A model generated the notes under the pieces. The model was not told the DNA's origin. It saw only the letters and a program-made list of their open reading frames with translations, and searched no databases. Shown here piece by piece: positions 19,560 to 54,108 of a stretch of 64,000 nt of DNA; within the stretch, counting starts at the first letter, position 1; the number at the start of each line of letters is the position of its first letter. A program made the translations under genes and the position numbers. This DNA comes from Hypanus sabinus (taxonomy: Eukaryota), in contig NC_082715.1 of assembly GCF_030144855.1 (NCBI RefSeq), forward strand, positions 80,538,001 to 80,602,000, written 5' to 3'.

Positions 19560-20440
19560 GACTTCGCATCCCACACCATAACAGCTGACGGGTTGGGGGG
19601 AGGGGAGTTACCGGGGCAGGCATTCATAGTCGGGTGCGTACCCGGAGGCTTCATCGAGTGAGTTGTATCACCGCAAACCTCGGCTGAGCACTCAACCCCC
19701 TCGCTATCCAAGGAGAAGTGGATAAACTTCCTCATCCAACCAGCCGGCCAGCTCAAAAGGAAGAGGAAACGAAAGGGAAATCTTGGTAAAAGCTAGCGAT
19801 TTCTCTTCCGGATTATTTTGGTATCGAAAATGCTGCTGGATTTAAAAAACTTGAAATCTTGGAGGGTTAGGGGATAATAGGTGATTAACGTCCGGTTCCT
19901 AGTGAGTTGTGTCTGCTGGGCGCTGGAACATTCCTCGCCGGCGGCCGCTTCTCCGGCTGCTCTGAGGCGCGAACCTGTCGCCTGCCCGCTCGATCCCAAG
20001 GGGCCGAATGAAGGACAGGGGACCCTCGACCAGACAGTACTCCTTTACCGCCTCACGGCTCTGCAAATGGCAGCGGCCTGCAGTGCAGTGCGTTCCAGCC
20101 CGGCCCCCGGCCCTTTATACTTGCCTGGAAGAAGTGTGGAGGGAGAGAAGAAGCCAAAAGCAACGTTGGTGCTTTGATGTCGCTAAATATCTACAGACAG
20201 GAGGAGGACATTCCACAGGCAAAACGATCGACTGCAAAGAAGCCGGACCAGGGAGGGCGACGGTAGTCAGCTGCTCGCATCAAAACATAGCGACCAGGGC
20301 TTTCCCACAAGCCCTACGTCTCATGGGAAATGTCCTTTCCCTGCTCGGCGCTTGGCAATGCGAGGGAGCTGCCCCCTCGCTCGGCTGCACGGTGCAACTG
20401 ACAGCCTCCGAGGCGCTCAACTCTGACCGAAGCGTACGTT
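19560..20440 (-). promoter_or_regulatory. CpG-island promoter of PSEN2
   Basis: Locally high CpG. TATAAA at 20114-20119 (minus). Opposed ZNF143/SBS-like TTCCCA motifs at 20302-20335. YY1-like GCCATTT near 20065-20071 (minus). Confidence 0.65.
20049..20090 (-). other. PSEN2: Probable non-coding first exon (5' UTR) of PSEN2
   Basis: CpG-rich segment. TATAAA on the minus strand at 20114-20119, about 25-30 bp upstream. Ends at donor GCG|GTAAAG (GT at 20048-20047). TSS position is approximate. Confidence 0.6.
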
Positions 20441-20669: not shown

Positions 20670-23125
20670 ATGCGAGAAGTATCGAAGGAAAGGCAGATGA
20701 ATCTACATCTGGAATTATGATGTTGTAGCCATTAGTGAGACTTGGCTGCAGGAGGAGAAGGACTGGCTGCTCAGTGTTCTGGGGTTCCGTTGTTTAGAAG
20801 TGACGGGGGGGTGGGGGGGTGGCATCACTAGCTCGGGAAAATGTCAGGACAGACTGGAGAACTCGTCTGGTGAGGCTTATTTTTTTGGGTGGAACTGGGA
20901 AATAAGAATGGAATGTCCGCGTTAACTGGGCCATGTTTTATAGACCACCCAACAATCCATGGGAACAAATTTGTAGAGAGATTGCAGACTGTTGCAAGAA
21001 ACATAAGGTTGTTATAATAGGTGATTTTAATTTTCCACATATTGACCCATACTGTAACAGGACTAGAAGGAATAGTGTGTTCAGGGAAGTTCCCTTCGTC
21101 GGTACATAGAAATCCGACAAGAGGATATGCGATGCTTGATCTGCTGTTGGGGAATGAGAGGTGACAGAAGTTTGTGTAGAGGAACACTTTGCATCCAGTG
21201 ATCATATTGCCATTAGTTTCAAAGTAAATATGGAAAAAGATAGGTCAGGTCAGAGGGTTGAGATTCTAAATTGGAGAAAGGCCAAATTTGATGGTATCTG
21301 AAAGGATCTGGCAAGTGTGGATTGGGACAGGCTGTTTTCTGCCAAAGGTGAGCTTGGCAAGTGGGAGGCCTTCAAAAGGAAGATTTTCAGCGTACAAAGC
21401 GTGTATGTGTTTGTCAGAATAAAAGGTAAAAACAACAGGTTTAGGGAATCTCGGTTTTCAACCGATATTGAGGTCTAGGTTAAAAAAATGGGAGGTGTAT
21501 AGGCAGGTAGGAACAAGTGAGGTGCTTATGGAGTACAAGAAATGCAAGAGAACACTGAAGAAAGAAATCGGGGGCTAAAAAAATGGCATTAAGTTGCCCG
21601 AGCAGACAAGGTGAAAGAGAATCCTATGGGATTCTATAGATTTGTTAAGAGCGAAAGGACTGCAAGGACAAAAATAGTTGGACCTTGTAGACATTACAGA
21701 AGAGGAAGTGTTTGCTAGTCTGAGGCAAATCAGGGTGAGTAAATCACCAGTGCCTGACAAGGTATTCCCTTGGATTTTGCGGGGGGAAATAGCAGAAATT
21801 GCAGGGGCCCTAGTAGAGATATTTAAATCATCGTTAGCAACAGATGAGGTACTGGCAGAATAGGGGATAGTTAATGTGTTCTGCTATTTAAAAACAAACC
21901 AGGAAATAAAAGGCCAGTGAGCTTGACATCGGTGGGAAAGTTATTGGAAGGTATTCTAAGAGACTGGATATATGAGAATTTGGAGAGACAGGGACTGATT
22001 AGGAACTGACAACATGGCTCCATGTGTGGTAGGTCGTGTCTCACCAAACTTATAGAGGTTTTTGAGGAAGTTACCAGGAAAGTCAGTGGAAGTTGTCTAC
22101 ATGGACTTTAGCAAGGCATTTGACAAGGTCCCTCATGGGAGGTTGGTCAAGAAGGTTCACTTGCTCGGCATCCAAGATGAGGTAGTAAACTGGATTAAAC
22201 ATTGGCTTTGTGGGAGAAGCCAGAGAGTGGCAGTGAATGGGTGCCTCTCTAATGAGTGGAGTGCTGCAGGGATTAGTGCTGGGTCCACTGTTGTTTGTCA
22301 TCTATATCAAAGATCTGGATGACAATATGGTTAATTGGATCAGCAAACTTACAGATAACACCAAGACTGGGGATGTAGAGGACAGTGAGAAAGACTATCA
22401 GAACTTGCAGCAAGATCTGGACCTGCTGGAAAAATGGTCTGGAAATGACAGATGGAACTTAATGCAGAAAAGTGCAAGGTGTTGCACTTGAGTAAGTCCA
22501 ACCAGGGTAGGTATTACGCGTCAAATGGTAGGGCACTGTGAGGAGTGTGATAGAGCAGAGGGATCTGGGGATCCAGGTCCACAATTCATTGAAAGTGGTG
22601 TCACAGGTTGATAGGGTTGTAAAGAAAGTTCTTGGCACGTTGGCCTTCATAAGTCATTATTGAGTACAGGAGATGGGATGTTATGTTGAAGTTGTATAAG
22701 ACACTGGTGAAGCCTAATTTTGGAGTATTGCGTGCAGTTTTGGTCACCCACATACAGGAAAGATGTAAATAAGGTTGAAAGAGTAGAGAAAAAATTGACA
22801 AGGATGTTGCTAGGACTGGAGGACCCGAGTTATAAGGAAAGATTGAATAGATTAGGAATGTATTCCTTGAAACATAAGAGATTGAAGGGAGATTTAATAG
22901 AGGTATACAAAACTATGAGAGGTATGGTTAGGGTAAATGCAAGCTGACCTTTTCCACTGAGGCTCGGTGGTCGTAGGTTATGGGTGAAAGGTGAAATGTT
23001 TAAGGGGAACTTGAGGGGAAACTACTTCTTTCAGAGTTGTGAGAGTGTGAAACAAGCTGCCAGCACAAGTGGTGCATGAACTTGATTTCAACCTTTAAGC
23101 AAAGTTTGGATAGGTACGTGGATGG
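20670..23125 (+). mobile_element. Degenerate, internally deleted CR1 ORF2 (APE to RT C-terminus)
   Basis: VVYMDFSKAFDKVPH, SGVLQGLVLGPLLF, EYCVQFWSP, GDLIEVYK. Confidence 0.93.
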
Positions 23126-23129
23126 TCGG

Positions 23130-23700
23130 TGACAGGTGGAGATAGATGATGGAGAAGATGGGTGGGTGGGCTGAAGTGAGAAGCTGGGAGATTAGTGGAA
23201 AAAGTAAAGGGCTGAAGAAGAAGGATCTGAGGAGACAGGACCGTGGAAGAGAGGGAAGGAGGAAGGGCACCAGAGGGAGGTGTTGGGAAGGTGAGAAGAT
23301 GAGAAAGGGTAAGGAGGGAGCCAGAAAGGCAAATGGAAAAGGAGAAAAGGGAGAGAGGTGAGAAATCAACCTTCATGCCATCAGGTTGGAGGCTACCCAA
23401 ATGGAATAGGAGATATTGCACCTCCAGCCTGAAAGTGGAGTCATCACAGCAGTAGGGGGTCCTTGGATCAACATGTCCGATTGGGAATAGGGGGTGCAAT
23501 TAAAATAGCTGTTCCTCCCTGTTGCAGATGGAGCAAAGGTGCTCATCAAAGTGGCTCCCCCAGTCAGTGTCAGGTCCCACCGATGTAGAGGAAGCCACAC
23601 CAGGAACACTGAATAGACAGCCCTGACAGACTTGCAGGTGAAATGCTGCGTTGCCTAGGACTGTTGGCGGCCCTGAATGGTGGCAAGGGAGGAGGTGTAC
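23130..23700 (-). mobile_element. Penelope-like element remnant, GIY-YIG endonuclease end
   Basis: Broken frames give IQCSWCGFLYIGGT and RLEVQYLLFHLGSLQPDGMKVDFS, followed by a pyrimidine-rich 3' region. Alignable to the copy at 52715-53365. Confidence 0.8.
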
Positions 23701-26700
23701 ATCTGTTTGCTGCCCTGAATAGGGGCAAAGGAGGAGGTGTACATCTGTTTGCGGCCCTGAATGGGGGCAAGGGAGGAGGTGTACATCTGTTTGCTGCCCT
23801 GAATAGGGGCAAAGGAGGAGGTGTACATCTGTTTGCTGCCCTGAATGGGGGCAAGGGAGGAGGTGTACATCTGTTTGCTGCCCTGAATGGGGGCAAGGGA
23901 GGAGGTGTACATCTGTTTGCTGCCCTGAATGGGGGCAAGGGAGGAGGTGTACATCTGTTTGCGGCCCTGAATGGGGGCAAGGGAGGAGGTGTACATCTGT
24001 TTGCTGCCCTGAATGGGGGCAAGGGAGGAGGTGTACCTCTGTTTGCTGCCCTGAATAGGGGCAAAGGAGGAGGTGTACATCTGTTGGCGGCCCTGAATGG
24101 GGGCAAGGGAGGAGGTGTACATCTGTTTGCTGCCCTGAATAGGGGCAAAGGAGGAAGTGTACATCTGTTTGCGGCCCTGAATGGGGGCAAGGGAGGAGGT
24201 GTACATCTGTTTGCTGCCCTGAATAGGGGCAAAGGAGGAGGTGTACATCTGTTTGCTGCCCTGAATGGGGGCAAGGGAGGAGGTGTACATCTGTTTGCTG
24301 CCCTGAATGGGGGCAAGGGAGGAGGTGTACATCTGTTTGCTGCCCTGAATGGGGGCAAGGGAGGAGGTGTACATCTGTTTGCGGCCCTGAATGGGGGCAA
24401 GGGAGGAGGTGTACATCTGTTTGCTGCCCTGAATGGGGGCAAGGGAGGAGGTGTACCTCTGTTTGCTGCCCTGAATAGGGGCAAAGGAGGAGGTGTACAT
24501 CTGTTGGCGGCCCTGAATGGGGGCAAGGGAGGAGGTGTACATCTGTTTGCTGCCCTGAATAGGGGCAAAGGAGGAGGTGTACATCTGTTTGCTGCCCTGA
24601 ATGGGGGCAAGGGAGGAGGTGTACATCTATTTGCTGCCCTGAATAGGGGCAAAGGAGGTGTACATCTGTTTGCTGCCCTGAGTAGAGGCAAAGGAGGAGG
24701 TGTACCTCTGTTTGCGGCCCTGATTGGGGGCAAAGGAGGAGGTGTACATCTGTTTGCGGCCCTGAATGGGGGCAAAGGAGGAGGTGTACATCTGTTTGCG
24801 GCCCTGAATGGGGGCAAGGGAGGAGGTGTACATCTGTTTGCGGCCCTGAATGGGGGCAAGGGAGGAGGTGTACATCTGTTTGCTGCCCTGAATAGGGGCA
24901 AAGGAGGTGTACATCTGTTTGCTGCCCTGAGTAGAGGCAAAGGAGGAGGTGTACATCTGTTTGCTGCCCTGAATGGGGGCAAGGGAGGAGGTGTACATCT
25001 GTTTGCTGCCCTGAATGGGGGCAAGGGAGGAGGTGTACATCTATTTGCTGCCCTGAATAGGGGCAAAGGAGGTGTACATCTGTTTGCTGCCCTGAATGGG
25101 GGCAAAGGAGGAGGTGTACATCTGTTTGCTGCCCTGAATGGGGGCAAGGGAGGAGGTGTACATCTATTTGCTGCCCTGAATAGGGGCAAAGGAGGTGTAC
25201 ATCTGTTTGCTGCCCTGAATGGGGGCAAAGGAGGAGGTGTACCTCTGTTTGCGGCCCTGAATGGGGGCAAGGGAGGAGGTGTACATCTATTTGCTGCCCT
25301 GAATAGGGGCAAAGGAGGTGTACATCTGTTTGCGGCCCTGAATGGGGGCAAGGGAGGAGGTGTTCCTCTGTTTGCGGCCCTGAATGGGGGCAAGGGAGGA
25401 GGTGTACCTCTGTTTGCTGCCCTGAATGGGGGCAAGGGAGGAGGTGTACATCTGTTTGCTGCCCTGAATAGGGGCAAAGGAGGAGGTGTACATCTGTTGG
25501 CGGCCCTGAATGGGGGCAAGGGAGGAGGTGTACATCTGTTTGCTGCCCTGAATAGGGGCAAAGGAGGAGGTGTACATCTGTTTGCTGCCCTGAATGGGGG
25601 CAAGGGAGGAGGTGTACATCTATTTGCTGCCCTGAATAGGGGCAAAGGAGGAGGTGTACATCTGTTTGCTGCCCTGAGTAGAGGCAAAGGAGGAGGTGTA
25701 CATCTGTTTGCGGCCCTGAATGGGGGCAAGGGAGGAGGTGTACATCTATTTGCTGCCCTGAATAGGGGCAAAGGAGGAGGTGTACCTCTGTTTGCGGCCC
25801 TGAATGGGGGCAAGGGAGGAGGTGTACATCTGTTTGCGGCCCTGAATGGGGGCAAGGGAGGAGGTGTACATCTGTTTGCGGCCCTGAATGGGGGCAAGGG
25901 AGGAGGTGTACCTCTGTTTGCTGCCCTGAATAGGGGCAAAGGAGGAGGTGTACATCTGTTTGCGGCCCTGAATGGGGGCAAAGGAGGAGGTGTACATCTG
26001 TTTGCGGCCCTGAATGGGGGCAAGGGAGGAGGTGTACCTCTGTTTGTGGCCCTGAATGGGGGCAAAGGAGGAGGTGTACCTCTGTTTGCGGCCCTGAATG
26101 GGGGCAAAGGAGGAGGTGTACATCTGTTTGCGGCCCTGAATGGGGGCAAGGGAGGAGGTGTACATCTGTTTGCGGCCCTGAATGGGGGCAAGGGAGGAGG
26201 TGTACCTCTGTTTGCTGCCCTGAATGGGGGCAAAGGAGGAGGTGTACATCTGTTTGCGGCCCTGAATGGGGGCAAGGGAGGAGGTGTACATCTGTTTGCG
26301 GCCCTGAATGGGGGCAAGGGAGGAGGTGTACCTCTGTTTGCGGCCCTGAATGGGGGCAAAGGAGGAGGTGTACATCTGTTTGCGGCCCTGAATGGGGGCA
26401 AGGGAGGAGGTGTACCTCTGTTTGTGGCCCTGAATGGGGGCAAAGGAGGAGGTGTACCTCTGTTTGCGGCCCTGAATGGGGGCAAAGGAGGAGGTGTACA
26501 TCTGTTTGCGGCCCTGAATGGGGGCAAGGGAGGAGGTGTACATCTGTTTGCGGCCCTGAATGGGGGCAAGGGAGGAGGTGTACCTCTGTTTGCTGCCCTG
26601 AATGGGGGCAAAGGAGGAGGTGTACATCTGTTTGCGGCCCTGAATGGGGGCAAGGGAGGAGGTGTACATCTGTTTGCGGCCCTGAATGGGGGCAAGGGAG

Positions 26701-27474
26701 GAGGTGTACCTCTGTTTGCGGCCCTGAATGGGGGCAAAGGAGGAGGTGTACATCTGTTTGCGGCCCTGAATGGGGGCAAGGGAGGAGGTGTACATCTGTT
26801 TGCGGCCCTGAATGGGGGCAAGGGAGGAGGTGTACATCTGTTTGCGGCCCTGAATGGGGGCAAGGGAGGAGGTGTACCTCTGTTTGCGGCCCTGAATAGG
26901 GGCAAAGGAGGAGGTGTACATCTGTTTGCGGCCCTGAATAGGGGCAAGGGAGGAGGTGTACATCTGTTTGCGGCCCTGAATGGGGGCAAGGGAGGAGGTG
27001 TACATCTGTTTGCGGCCCTGAATGGGGGCAAAGGAGGAGGTGTACATCTGTTTGCGGCCCTGAATGGGGGCAAAGGAGGAGGTGTACATCTGTTTGCGGC
27101 CCTGAATGGGGGCAAGGGAGGAGGTGTACATCTGTTTGCGGCCCTGAATGGGGGCAAGGGAGGAGGTGTACCTCTGTTTGCGGCCCTGAATAGGGGCAAA
27201 GGAGGAGGTGTACATCTGTTTGCGGCCCTGAATAGGGGCAAAGGAGGAGGTGTACATCTGTTTGCGGCCCTGAATGGGGGCAAGGGAGGAGGTGTACATC
27301 TGTTTGCGGCCCTGAATGGGGGCAAGGGAGGAGGTGTACATCTGTTTGCGGCCCTGAATGGGGGCAAGGGAGGAGGTGTACATCTGTTTGCGGCCCTGAA
27401 TGGGGGCAAGGGAGGAGGTGTACATCTGTTTGTGGCCCTGAATGGGGGCAAGGGAGGAGGTGTACCTCTGTTGG
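23661..27474. repeat. 42-bp tandem array (91 units, five of them 39 bp); consensus ctgtttgc(g/t)gccctgaat(g/a)ggggcaa(g/a)ggaggaggtgtac(a/c)t
   Basis: Directly visible periodicity; 91x42 - 5x3 = 3807 bp plus a terminal CTGTTGG. Confidence 0.99.
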
Positions 27475-28399
27475 ATTGCATCCTCAACTCTGGCTGGAGC
27501 AGGCATGTTCTGTTCTTTAAAAATAAACCCTCAAGGACAAACTTAAGTTTGGTTTAAATATTAAAAAGTTATAAATCAATTTCTGTAGAGTGAATTCTAT
27601 TCCAAAACTAGATCTGCATTATATTGGTGTTTGTATTGGTTTACAAGTGTAACAGGTAACAGAATACAGTGAAAAGCTCGTCTTCCATATTGTTCAAATA
27701 GATCAGTGCATTGAGGTAGAACAAGGTAAACTAATAACAATGCAGGGTAACTGCACAGACTGTCCCCAGCACATCCTCAAGACTGTTAACGCAATCAACA
27801 CTTTTCACTCTATGTTTCAAAGTACAAGCGATAAATAAATTGAAATCTGAACACCTGAGTCACTCTGTGGGTCAGGCAGCATCTGTGGAGGGAAATGAAC
27901 AATTCCCCCACTGAGGTCCTCCAGCAGTTTTGTTTTGCTTCAGATTACAGCATTTGCAGACTTGTGTCTTTGCATCAAATTGAGCAATCTGCAAACTGAA
28001 GTCAAATCTAAACTCTTACGTCTGTAGGTTCCTGATGGCTTTCTGACCTAAAGGTTCTTCGCTACTCAGAAATGAGGCACAAAATTTGTTGCTTACAATC
28101 ATCTTATCAAGTGTTACAGGAGCAAAGAATACAAGGGAAGTAAAATAACTTCCCTTCCACAGGTATCAAAGATAGAGAGGAGACAAGTGGAGAAGAGCGG
28201 GGCAGGAGGTGGTGGGGCGTGGGGAGAGCCTCAGGAAAAATAGAACAAAGATGGTCTGATGACATACCACTAATAACAATAAATTCTGGTAACCAATTAA
28301 ATAGTTGGATTTAAGTAACATGATACCTGTTACTGAAACCAAGAGGTTTCCAGAAAAATACAGAGGCAACTGAAAGACACACTGACCAATCACGTGTGT

Positions 28400-28908
28400 G
28401 CTCAGTGGCCACTTTGTTAGGTACACCTGTTCGTTATTGCAAATATCTAATCTGCCAATCATGTGGCAGTAGCTCCGTGCATAAAAGCATGCAGACATGG
28501 TCAAGAGGTTCAGTTGTTATTCAGGCCAAACATCAGAATGGGGAAGAAATGGGATCTTAGACTCTTCCATTGTGGAATAATTGTTGGTGCTAGATGGGAT
28601 GGTTTGAGTATGATCTGGGACTTTCATGCACAACAATCTCTAGAGTTTATAGAGAGTGGTACAAAAAACAAAAAAAAAAAATCCAGAGAGTGGTAGTTTT
28701 TGTTAATGAGAGAGGTCAGAGGAGAATGGACAGATGAGTCCAAGGTGACAGATGCAACAGAGGTGTGCAGAAGAGCACCCCTGAATGCACAACTTGTTGA
28801 ACCTGACCCTGAGATGGATGAGTGACAGCAGCAGCAGACCAGGGACATACACTCAATCGCCACGGTATTAGGTACGGGAGGTATTAGCAATGGAACCACT
28901 GAAGTGTC
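28400..28908 (+). mobile_element. Non-autonomous Tc1-like DNA transposon
   Basis: Alignable to 2733-3253; MGKKWDL..GIIVGAR. Confidence 0.8.
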
Positions 28909-29106
28909 CAGACTATAGGCGATTATATAACAACAAAAGCAAGCATAAGAAAGATAAACTACAAAAACAACAGCAAATCTACGCCCCAATCCAACACATT
29001 AAGCCAAGTTCAAGATCATATTCAAATTTATTCAACTACACACACGTATACAGCTAAACGAAATATCATTCTCTGGAGCCAAGGTGTGAAATACTGTACA
29101 TACACT

Positions 29107-29303
29107 CACACACAGCACATGTAGCTACGATCTGTGCAGTCACACACAGCATATGTAGTTACAATCCAGTACAGTCTCACACAGCTCATATAGCTACGAT
29201 CGGTACAGTCACACACAGCATATGTAGTTACGATCCAGTACAGTCACACACAGCTCATATAGTTACAATCCAGTACAGTAAAAAAAAACACACATAGTTA
29301 CGA
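29107..29303. repeat. 34/35-bp minisatellite, about 5.5 units (cacacacagcatatgtagttacgatccagtacagt)
   Basis: Directly visible tandem units with alternating variants. Confidence 0.9.
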
Positions 29304-31194
29304 CTCAGTTTCGGAGATAGTCAAACCACCCCATCTGACACCAATAGTCATCTCACGGTCAAAGTCACTGCAATCACATTTCTTCTCTATTCTGAGGTTG
29401 GTCTGAACTGCCTGACCATGTCTGCATGCCTTTATGCAGTGAGCCACTGCCACATGATTGGCTGATTAGATATTTGCGTTATGAGCAGGTGTACAGGTGT
29501 GCCTAATAAAGTGGCAACTGAATGCTAACTAATCTAAACATGTGGAGGTTGATCGGCCTCTGTTATCACTGCAAGTGTAGGGTAGGTGACTGGCAGGAAA
29601 AACAGAGACTGTTGATGAAATTATGCAAGAGAACTGATCACAGGGGACAAGTGGGAGTGGTGTTTAAAGGAATTACTGAGAGTCAGCATAAATTCAATGG
29701 GCTGAATGGACTAGTTACTAATTCAAGATAAAGATCTTGAATTAAAAATTTGCTTTATTTGCCACATGTACATAAAAACATACAATGAAATGCATCATTT
29801 TGTGTCAATGACGTAAGGACTGTGCTGGGGGCAGCTCACAAGCATTGCTATACTTTCTGCGCCAATGCAGCATGCTCACAACTTCCTAACCCTAGCCTGT
29901 ACATCTTTGAACTGTGGAAGGAAACTGGAGCCCCCAGAGGAAACCCACACGGTCATGGGGAGAACATACAAACTCCTTACAGACAGTGGCGGGAATTGAA
30001 TCCAGATCAGTGATAGCTGGTGCCGTAAGGCAATTGTGCTAACTGCTATGCTACCGTGCCACCTAGAATTTACAAGTGGCAGGAGGTCATCATGAAATTA
30101 AACAATTTGCCCCTCTGCTTTGCAAAATAATTCTGGAAAAGGATACAGTATTCCTAAAACACCATCAAAATTGTAACAGTGAAAGCAGGCTGCTCCGGCC
30201 AACCAGTCAGTGTTAGTGTACATTTAGTGGATTAATCTCACGTTCTCCCTGTATCCCATTCTCCCTTTTTCTTTCAACAAAGGAAGGCTTAAAAATTCCC
30301 AATACATCACCAGCACCTGCCTATCCACCATCAAGGACATAAAGTATATACAGAAAGGCCAGAATTATCATGAAAGATTCCACCCACCCTGTTCATGGAC
30401 TCTTTGTCCCACTCCCATCAGGGAGAAGGTTAATCAGCATCCATGCCAAGACCACCAGACTCAAAAACAGTTACTTTCACCATGCAGTAAGGCTAATCAA
30501 CAGCTCTACCTACAAACACACCCCACCACCGCCAGTTTATCATTTTCTGTCAGATACTCCTGCTCCTAGTGCAATGTTATGTACAATAAGTATATGAGCT
30601 AATTGTATGTGTTTATAAGGGAATCCACCCTAACAAAATATGTGGATCCTGGATCAGCCTCTACAGCTATCTGAGGACCCACCAATAGACAACCGCTTAG
30701 GAGAGCGTCTTACTGGACTCGAGTTATCGCACTACTACAATGTATTTATATTTATTATGTTTTTTGTGTATATGCTGCATCAGATCCAGAGTAACAATCA
30801 TTTTGTTCTTCACAGTTGCGTACTGGATGAATGACAATAAACAATCTTGAAACTTAACTAGTGTCATGCAACAAACAATCTGCTGGAAGAACTCTAGGAA
30901 TACTGTAGTCAATATTACAGGGCATGACCCCAAACATTGACAATTCCTTTCCTCTCCCAGATGTTGCTTGACCCACTGAGTTCTTCCAGCAGATCTTTTG
31001 TTGTTCCCAGTTCCAGCTCGCGCAGTCTTCCATGTCTCCAGTGACTAATCTCATCATTGCTGAATGAGACTTCATGGCAAGTCAATCGGCTGCTATGTTT
31101 CGAAAAGAACACCTTCCACTTGCAGTTACTCTCTTTAATACAGGGCACAGATTGTTCAAAGAAGCCCAGGGATCATAGCAACAGCATGTCTCTG

Positions 31195-52612: not shown

Positions 52613-52714
52613 ACTGGGAATTGCGTTCCTATGACGTCATTGTATTATTACGTCAAAGCATTCAATACAATTCAATTGTTTAACGTCACATCTGGTACAC
52701 TAGTGTAAGGATTA

Positions 52715-53365
52715 CCAGTGTAGAGGAGGCCGCATGAGGAGCACCGGACAACCCCAGCAGACTCGCACTTGAACTGCTGCCTCACCTGGGAGGACTGTTA
52801 GACCTTCTAATTTGGCGGACCACTTCGTCCAGCTCCTCCACAAGCGAGACTTAGCCAAACATTTTAATTCCCATTTCCGCCCCGACGTATCAATCCATTG
52901 CCTTCTCGTGTGCCAAGAAGAGGCCACCCTCAGGGTGGAGGAGCAATACCTTGCATTCCAACCTGAGTACCCTCCATCCCTATGTTTTCTCCTTCCGGTG
53001 GACATATTTCACCCCTCCCCTTCTGACCTTTTACTTCTTCTCACCTGTCTATTACTTACACCCGCGTCCCCTCCTCCTTTCCTTTCTCATATTGTCCACT
53101 CTCCTCCGCTAATTCTGTCCTCTCCAGCCCTTGCCCTTACCCACCCACCTGGCTTCACATATCACCTTCCAGCTAGCCTCTATCCCCTCCCCCACCTTTT
53201 AATGCCGGCATCTTCCACACTTCCTTCTCAGTCCTGAAGAACGAAAACATCCACTGTTTATATTCTTCTCCATGAATACATTCTGCCTGACCTGCTGAGT
53301 TCCACCGGCGTTTTGTATGCGTCGCTTTGGATTTCTAGCATCTGCAGACTTTCTCGTGTTTTTAC
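52715..53365 (+). mobile_element. Penelope-like element 3' remnant with an inverted 5' piece (52715-52803)
   Basis: DHFVQLL..AKHFNSH..VSIHCLLVCQEEATLRVEEQYL (GIY-YIG C-terminal part), pyrimidine-rich UTR, terminal repeat ending ccagcatctgcaga..tgtgttt-type. Confidence 0.75.
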
Positions 53366-54108
53366 TAACAGTAAATATACCTGGAATGTCCAGATTGATG
53401 ATGTTCACCAGTGGAGTAATTGCAGTCACTTTCCTGGCATTGTCTGGAGAAAAGCTGTTGAAACTGGCTGCCTGAAGACAATGTTGAAAATAGTGGCCCC
53501 CATCTTAACTGCGTTTCCCAGGAGCACCATTGAGAGCGTCCTGACAAGTTGCTATGGGAGCAGAAGTCCCTGCAAAGGACTGTGAGAACAGCTGAGAGGA
53601 TCATAGGGGTCTCCCTACCTTCCATCGGAGACATTTATCCGGAGCGCTGCGTACGCAGGGCGCCACCTATCCTTCCAGCACCCTCTTTGACTTTCTAGCA
53701 TCAGGCAGGAGACTACAATGCATAAAAACGAGAACGGTTAGAATGAGAAACAGTTTCTTCCCGCAGGCTTTTAGGCCTCTGAATTTCCAGCCGTATCGTA
53801 CTCGAAGTGTCACTTGTTAGTTAATCTGTTATGTACTTTGCAATATTTAAAATTATGCATCTCAGTTTGTTAGTTATGTGTGATTCATGAGTAAATTTTA
53901 CCCTTACTTTCATAAATTATCGTGTATTATATGTGCTACTGTGCTTTACACCCTGGTTTGGAGAAACATTGTCTCATTTCTGTATATATTATGGTTATAT
54001 ACGTTAGATATACAGTATGTACAGAATGTAGTTAAATGACAATAAACTTGACTAGTGGTAGTTAACTGAGACGGATTTTACGTTGACCGTGTAGCTTACT
54101 GCTGTTCT

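Follow-up and report, generated by a model that had tools for sequence, protein, structure and literature searches.

A 42-bp minisatellite that probably grew from the truncated open reading frame of a Penelope-like element in the stingray Hypanus sabinus

The locus described here carries a long tandem array of 42-bp units joined to the remains of a Penelope-like element (PLE), and lies in a 64,000-nucleotide stretch of the Hypanus sabinus genome (NC_082715.1, forward-strand positions 80,538,001 to 80,602,000), which is called the window below and in whose own numbering positions are given. A presenilin gene is encoded on the minus strand, with exons (Pfam PF01080) at ~14.5, 12.9 and 8.6 kb, and a CpG-rich stretch at 19601-20400 is likely its promoter or first exon. 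The array starts ~3.3 kb upstream of the CpG-rich stretch, which makes plausible the distance of about 3.5 kb from the predicted presenilin promoter given in an earlier reading of this DNA (hereafter the original prediction). The features on which the argument rests are the following.

19601 to 20400, minus strand: CpG-rich stretch (GC 0.53-0.58, CpG observed/expected ratio 0.7-0.9)
23130 to 23660, minus strand: degenerate 3' part of a PLE, comprising the GIY-YIG region and a C/T-rich tail (six-frame translation; alignment of PLE loci)
23661 to 27474, minus strand: 42-bp minisatellite, 91 units and a terminal 7-mer (Tandem Repeats Finder, TRF; unit segmentation; variants)
23661 to 23702, minus strand: PLE-adjacent terminal unit, with 39 PLE bases at 23661-23699
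23737 to 24575, unstranded: recent 10-unit block duplication (419-bp exact repeat, lag 420 bp)
25955 to 26793, unstranded: recent 9-unit block duplication (461-bp exact repeat, lag 378 bp)
27468 to 27474, plus strand: flank-side 7-mer CTGTTGG (minus-strand CCAACAG), which may have served as a direct repeat in the founding slippage
27475 to 27640, unstranded: non-PLE flank, single-copy in the genome (no PLE match; genome uniqueness; depth in related runs)

TRF reported a 42-bp period with 91.1 copies, 94% matches and 0% indels at 23661-27472, and direct reading of the ends placed the true end at 27474, including a terminal 7-mer. The array that had been proposed at 23580-27490, with an amplification of about 90-fold, is thus real, with slightly different limits. 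In minus-strand order it consists of CCAACAG followed by 91 manually segmented units, 86 of them 42 bp and five 39 bp long, the shorter variants being frame-preserving. Every unit opens with a 3-bp linker, ATG in 72/91 and AGG in 19/91, and its other 39 nt are PLE coding sequence, translated as YTSS(L/F)APIQG(R/S)KQ. The pattern YTSS[LF]APIQG[RS]KQ was fitted by 72/91 units and the remaining units were one-step variants, so that the claim that all units read this way was slightly overstated. In total, 23 sequence variants occur among the 91 units, with a mean pairwise identity of 95%. The unit next to the PLE remnant reads YTSSLATIQGRQQ(S) on the minus strand, exactly as had been described for the leftmost unit, and keeps the PLE state ACC at a position where the interior units carry CCC.

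No regular higher-order period was found in the array. The exact repeats of 461 and 419 bp show recent multi-unit duplications, such as unequal exchange or slippage would give. Head-to-tail units within the 10-100 bp range at one locus define a minisatellite; satellite DNA in the strict sense, a genome-wide family at several loci or in heterochromatin, is a different matter, as the window-type unit forms one 3.8-kb array, and the term satellite used in the original prediction went too far. The 14-codon period keeps the minus-strand frame of 23661-27474 open over long distances (6/91 units contain a stop codon, and uninterrupted translation extends to at most 573 aa), and gene predictors could call a repetitive protein here.

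More than 25 other PLE copies contain the 39-nt part of the unit (TACACC...AAACAG, YTSSLTTIQGPKQ) as a single, contiguous segment that shares its frame with the GIY-YIG region and has ...TGCTACACCTGTCCC on its upstream side and TCCTTCCAGGTGAGG... (or TCCTTCCAGGTGAGGCAACACTTCAC...) on its downstream side. All comparisons were made copy by copy. The majority array unit equals most of 22 PLE copies at 36/39 positions. In a protein alignment, YTSSLTTIQGPKQSFQV lies between a CX2C knuckle and the FTCxS...YCIxCxxCxxxYIGET core, and the unit-forming segment accordingly sits between the knuckle and the GIY-YIG core. The invariant cysteines of alignment A1 are C344, C348, C351, C375, C383, C386 and C389, and the YTSSLTTIQGPKQ segment falls between C351 and C375, in the cysteine-rich linker. 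The peptide YTSSLTTIQGPKQSFQV, which the original prediction had placed in elasmobranch PLEs just before the GIY-YIG motif, is indeed present there, both in less decayed copies and in proteins of rays and sharks. Taken together, these comparisons identify the array unit as PLE coding sequence, and the possibility raised in advance that the unit would bear no similarity to PLEs was not borne out by the genome's own copies.

The identity of the element family was derived from better-preserved members. A copy with a stop-free frame of 476 aa (L040) has its relatives among ray and shark proteins, and its own GIY-YIG region scored 15.9 bits with Pfam, at the expected position and below the threshold, so that family membership rests on full-length relatives. 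PF01541 was found in P0015 and P0017 at 25 bits (cut-off 22.6), covering residues 706-751 of ~805, while RVT_1 in P0015 reached E=8e-7 and 29.4 bits against a cut-off of 29.6, and precomputed PF00078 is listed for P0015, P0017, P0018, P0021 and others. A reverse transcriptase combined with GIY-YIG is the hallmark of endonuclease-positive (EN+) PLEs (10.64898/2026.07.22.740005). The window copy has no reverse transcriptase owing to its 5' truncation.

PLE open reading frame (ORF) fragments, some of them frame-shifted, have also entered the annotations of Hypanus sabinus and Mobula hypostoma as host-gene isoforms (P0001, P0008, P0009 and P0040), under the names 'mucin-2 isoform X2', 'proline-rich protein 36-like', 'divergent protein kinase domain 1C isoform X2' and 'chitinase domain-containing protein 1 isoform X1'. 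These labels are probably annotation artefacts.

The PLE remnant at 23130-23660 runs directly on from the last array unit, which continues into it in frame as in single PLE copies, and the seamless join that had been predicted was thereby confirmed. The remnant itself carries frameshifts and stops. Pieces of the GIY-YIG motif are spread over its three frames (CSWCGFLYIGGT, HFDEHL and LEVQYLLFHLGSLQPDGMKVDFS), among them YIG(G/E)T, EHL and LGSLQPDGM..DFS. Its identity to dozens of PLE copies (L030-L058) is 68-73%, with homology spanning 23129-23699. When the last unit and the remnant were used together as a query, 5,213 first-look candidates were obtained from the genome, and 40 scored candidates aligned at 70-73% identity from query position 4-8, within the unit, through position 343.

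When whole PLE loci with 1.5 kb of upstream sequence were compared with the window by BLAST, every alignment stopped at 23695-23699, at the T of TACACC, and no PLE upstream sequence was found in 27475-28400 by BLAST with whole loci and long reference copies. As all alignments end there and nothing PLE-like follows beyond the array, the copy is 5'-truncated where the repeated segment begins. Internal duplication within a longer PLE copy was rejected, there being no PLE sequence past the array. The adjoining flank (27475-27640) is unique, a search of the genome for a paralogue of it having returned none.

The linker is not PLE sequence either. The normal PLE linker, CCC+TACACCTCCTCC, gave 3,508 genome matches compared with 130 for a reversed-pattern control, whereas ATG+TACACCTCCTCC gave 79, namely 66 within the array and 13 elsewhere, with 7 for the control. 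The ATG linker was found in one PLE copy (L028), but its genome-wide occurrence is at background level, and it was therefore rejected as PLE sequence. The unit consequently spans the PLE tip and the bases of the junction. On the far side of the array, CTGTTGG at 27468-27474 repeats the CTGTTGG at 23661-23667, as had been noticed in the original prediction. The flank 7-mer agrees with the PLE-adjacent unit at 7/7 bases and with the end of the majority unit at 6/7, the eighth base mismatching, and the chance of at least 6/7 flank bases matching the unit end is ~1e-3. The array thus has the form DR-(X-DR)n, in which the direct repeat (DR) at the end of the unit is also carried by the flank.

These observations can be assembled into a history in which the array is a locus-specific minisatellite grown from the ORF of an old PLE copy through slippage between the two 7-mers, a reading to which a probability of roughly 65% is assigned. 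The PLE copy would have been inserted in a 5'-truncated form, beginning at the Y codon of YTSSL(T/A)TIQGPKQ, so that three non-PLE bases, ATG, and the flank CCAACAG came to lie directly upstream of the truncated tip, with the element's own C(A/C)AACAG 42 bp downstream of the flank copy. Slippage or a microhomology-mediated tandem duplication between the two 7-mers, of the Haber-Louis type, may then have produced the initial 42-bp repeat, in which 3 junction bases are joined to 39 PLE bases. Expansion to ~91 units, with homogenisation, would have followed by unequal exchange or by slippage during replication, some of it in multi-unit steps, and would have preceded the split from relatives that are ~3% diverged.

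The founding duplication is favoured by the end of PLE homology at 23699, by the non-PLE linker and by a flank that ends in the terminal 7-mer of the unit. With regard to the 42-bp seed duplication envisaged in the original prediction, a unit that spans the PLE tip and junction bases and a 7-mer shared by both array ends have held up, while the founding event itself is one that we infer. Several points weigh on the other side. The 7-mer could simply be the remainder of a unit cut by 5' truncation or by a deletion, the pre-duplication allele not having been seen. Related arrays on two other contigs, C24 and C37, lie inside PLE copies, and flank sequence is hence unnecessary for array formation. 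The canonical PLE downstream repeat is CAAACAG, not CCAACAG, and the original match may have been 6/7. The linker next to the flank differs between the assembly (AGG) and the relatives (ATG), which means that the edge units are not frozen, and the array length is that given by the assembly.

A minimum age was obtained from X1, X2 and X3, three independent runs from related organisms, not from the assembly individual, that are ~3% diverged from the window. The unique flank is present in them at single-copy depth (4.5, 16.3 and 9.4, respectively). In both X2 and X3 a contig passes from the flank through an unaltered 7-mer and breaks off after 32-39 bp of array. Contig extension in a k=31 graph halts on entering a repeat cycle, and a single unit would have let the contig reach the PLE remnant, so that a multi-copy array is indicated. 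The array word depth was ~60-90x the flank depth in X1-X3, with the same unit variants, although summed contig depth is not copy number and is a rough indication only. At 27466 X2 and X3 read A, which turns the flank-adjacent linker into ATG, and the AGG of the assembly is therefore a derived variant. A single-unit state was not seen at the orthologous site in X1-X3, and the retention of both junction and multi-copy array indicates that the array predates the split from these relatives.

A genome search with six units located the window-type, high-identity array at one locus only, and recovered diverged arrays elsewhere. The array L089 (C24:49535170-49537530) comprises 55 copies of a 43-bp unit in which CCCC precedes the 39-mer known from the window array. 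It is embedded in a PLE copy, with a CAGCCC direct repeat at its borders, and its period is not a multiple of three. Contig C37 holds at least eight arrays with a 42-bp period in 65.1-74.2 Mb of its 83.66 Mb (L018-L023, L026 and L059-L088; 65.09-74.20 Mb). Their register is shifted 12 bp in the 5' direction, each unit consisting of the 12 nt TACACCTGTCCC that precede YTSS and then the first 30 nt of the 39-mer, and PLE sequence was present on both sides of every C37 array examined. The implication of the original prediction that the window array was singular was thus not upheld. As the junctions in the window, on C24 and on C37 differ and each fits its own PLE context, the arrays represent separate births.

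Five C37 arrays, other than those at 65.09, 67.15 and 69.92 Mb, were reconstructed (40-89 units each in the stretches analysed) and share one majority unit, differing at a single C/T site, whereas the PLE copies that host them show no more than 63-72% identity, starting with the first base beyond the array. The loci were rejected as old segmental duplicates because their flanks are not colinear outside the PLE part. A shared unit in diverged hosts points to array-confined exchange, or homology-guided spread, among old copies. The 5' truncation points of the seven array-bearing copies (window, L089 and C37 A-E) lie 0, 18, ~50, 60, 62, 75 and 190 bp upstream of the segment. Truncation within 80 bp was thus found in 6/7 of them compared with 28% of 25 ordinary copies (60% within 200 bp), which is suggestive of a link between 5' junctions and array birth (~p=0.02 if three independent births are assumed, in a small sample).

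From these data a broader proposal can be drawn, which is put forward tentatively and with odds well short of even. The ~55-bp stretch of the PLE ORF before GIY-YIG may be a recurrent site of minisatellite birth, having acted in three independent registers (C28, C24 and C37) and with a preference for the 5' ends of truncated copies, and the resulting arrays may keep or spread one satellite among diverged copies within a region. If this were true, dispersed retroelement copies would offer a satellite homologous sites at which to land or to exchange.

The same arrays also nourish the most serious alternative for the window, according to which the array already existed in the source PLE, and the copy was inserted 5'-truncated within it or lost its upstream part later, leaving the 7-mer as a partial unit. 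Arrays of the same segment do occur inside PLE copies on C24, in a nearly identical register (CCCC plus the 39-mer), and on C37; 5' truncation is the rule for PLE copies here, and the predictions for the window locus are identical to those of slippage. What speaks against a pre-formed array is that no other array with the ATG junction was found in the assembly, that the ATG linker is essentially missing from PLE copies, and that the remnant shares 70% identity with the C24 host, no closer than the 68-76% seen with random copies. This origin is accordingly judged unlikely, though it deserves appreciable weight. Far less can be said for a widespread satellite that came to lie beside a PLE remnant, whether fortuitously or through a secondary insertion. 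Related 42-43-bp arrays do exist on C37 and C24, but their junctions differ and each fits its own PLE context; the confinement of the window-type unit to a single locus, together with the seamless, in-frame passage of the last unit into the remnant as in single copies, effectively refutes it, and the original prediction had itself named a widespread satellite as an outcome that would undo its reading.

Mis-assembly of a much shorter repeat, which would have inflated or even created the array, is improbable. The two long exact block duplications could in principle be artefacts. On the other hand, three independent related runs show the same variants at ~60-90x the flank in array word depth, and the non-periodic order of the 23 unit variants is atypical of a collapsed or expanded assembly. 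Still less probable is a functional array, whether it acts as a coding repeat or, as a tandem repeat, regulates the presenilin gene. The period is a multiple of three, the 39-bp variants stay in frame, the frame is open for up to 573 aa and the array is placed ~3.3 kb upstream of the CpG island on the same strand; in addition, X15, X18 and X23, small runs presumed to be RNA, contain 12-23% of the sampled array words, which may reflect transcription of this array or of PLE copies. These points are countered by six in-frame stops, by free R/S/H, L/F and M/R variation, by a unit frame simply inherited from the PLE ORF, by the frameshifted state of the adjoining remnant and by the finding of the array in no run on record as RNA. 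A neutral tandem repeat is therefore the most likely status of the array, nothing indicating a function or a link to presenilin. Slippage between the 7-mers at the tip of a truncated PLE thus stays the preferred origin.

DNA structure was considered as a driver of slippage and found unsupported. The single-copy PLE segment showed no unusual single-stranded DNA (ssDNA) structure (z = -0.6 and +0.4), and the G-rich strand of the array was mildly structured (z = -2.5). No Rfam match at E<=0.1, including the hammerhead ribozyme, was obtained in 21500-29500 of the window, where the PLE tail is cut by another repeat at 23131, so that the absence of a hammerhead says little about the family. Loose ends beside 27901 contain a motif of the GTCGACGTTTCGGGTCGAGACCCTTCATCA type; its reverse complement corresponds to a hammerhead-like CUGAUGA...GAAAC core.

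Two further repeats in the window bear on the remnant.

22080 to 23131, unstranded: a different interspersed repeat abutting the 3' end of the remnant (77% identity to L057:2255-3321)
52702 to 52799, minus strand: second PLE fragment, a GIY-YIG-proximal stretch (aligned by 23566-23665)

The second fragment had been predicted to be alignable to the remnant, and 23566-23665 does match it, as do 24 PLE loci. It ends at AACAG and therefore holds only the last 5 nt of the unit-forming segment. This minus-sense fragment abuts the 3' part of a plus-sense PLE (~52804-53390), the two making a head-to-head inverted pair. Beyond the unique flank, very high-copy repeat fragments occupy 27640-27950, with a word depth of up to ~10^4 x the single-copy level in all runs. 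An inverted pair of copies of a ~205-bp interspersed repeat follows at 28408-28611 and 29310-29516, both matching L038:3065-3283 and L053:393-669 at 72-74% identity.

The window array belongs to a group of several Penelope-derived arrays in this ray genome, which is 4 Gb in size and rich in tandem repeats. The locus keeps nearly all the pieces of its birth, namely the source element, the junction within the unit, a short direct repeat and recent block duplications, and makes a clean teaching example. The main added interest lies in the repeated production of arrays by one short PLE segment in the stingray genome. Such arrays may bear on how far old retroelement copies feed the growth of elasmobranch tandem repeats, and on whether truncated 5' junctions are favoured.

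PLEs have been described as a source of tandem repeats before, in the form of non-LTR retrozymes and repeats derived from PLE pseudo-long terminal repeats (pLTRs) (10.64898/2026.07.22.740005; PMC4209133). Those repeats originate from a non-coding terminal region with hammerhead ribozymes and are possibly mobilised, in contrast to the coding unit of the stingray array, around which no ribozyme was detected in 21.5-29.5 kb. The C37 arrays resemble a 52-bp minisatellite of Xenopus, built from the tail of a short interspersed element (SINE/tRNA-V), in that a short fragment of a transposable element (TE) was expanded repeatedly, in several copies and in a restricted region (10.1101/2021.10.18.464293). 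The Xenopus fragment comes from the SINE 3' tail and was expanded only in subtelomeric copies, whereas the C37 arrays lie 9-19 Mb from a contig end; the window array is mid-contig.

Satellites have also been traced to retrotransposon ORFs, such as chicken HinfI from CR1 ORF2 and hamster PROsat from L1 ORF2 (review PMC9659126). Here the likeness is a monomer homologous to retroelement coding sequence and not to long terminal repeats (LTRs), terminal inverted repeats (TIRs) or untranslated regions (UTRs), and the difference is that those monomers are longer and form multi-locus satellites, whereas the stingray unit of 42 bp occupies a single euchromatic locus. A PLE case is not listed in the table of that review, in which the word 'Penelope' occurs 0 times. 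The proposed mechanism corresponds to the slippage model of Haber and Louis, and in 2012 Ahmed and Liang described 300 human TE-derived tandem repeats flanked by direct repeats of 5-20 bp, mostly 7 bp (PMC3389668). A unit cut from a TE, a 7-bp direct repeat of the modal size and local expansion after insertion are common to these repeats and the stingray array. The human survey is made up mostly of Alu and LTR sequences, while the stingray source is a PLE ORF and the unit includes the 5' junction with its 3 non-TE bases. In the light of these studies (PMC3389668, PMC9659126 and 10.1101/2021.10.18.464293), the window array is a single-locus minisatellite of a documented kind and not a new class of satellite origin.

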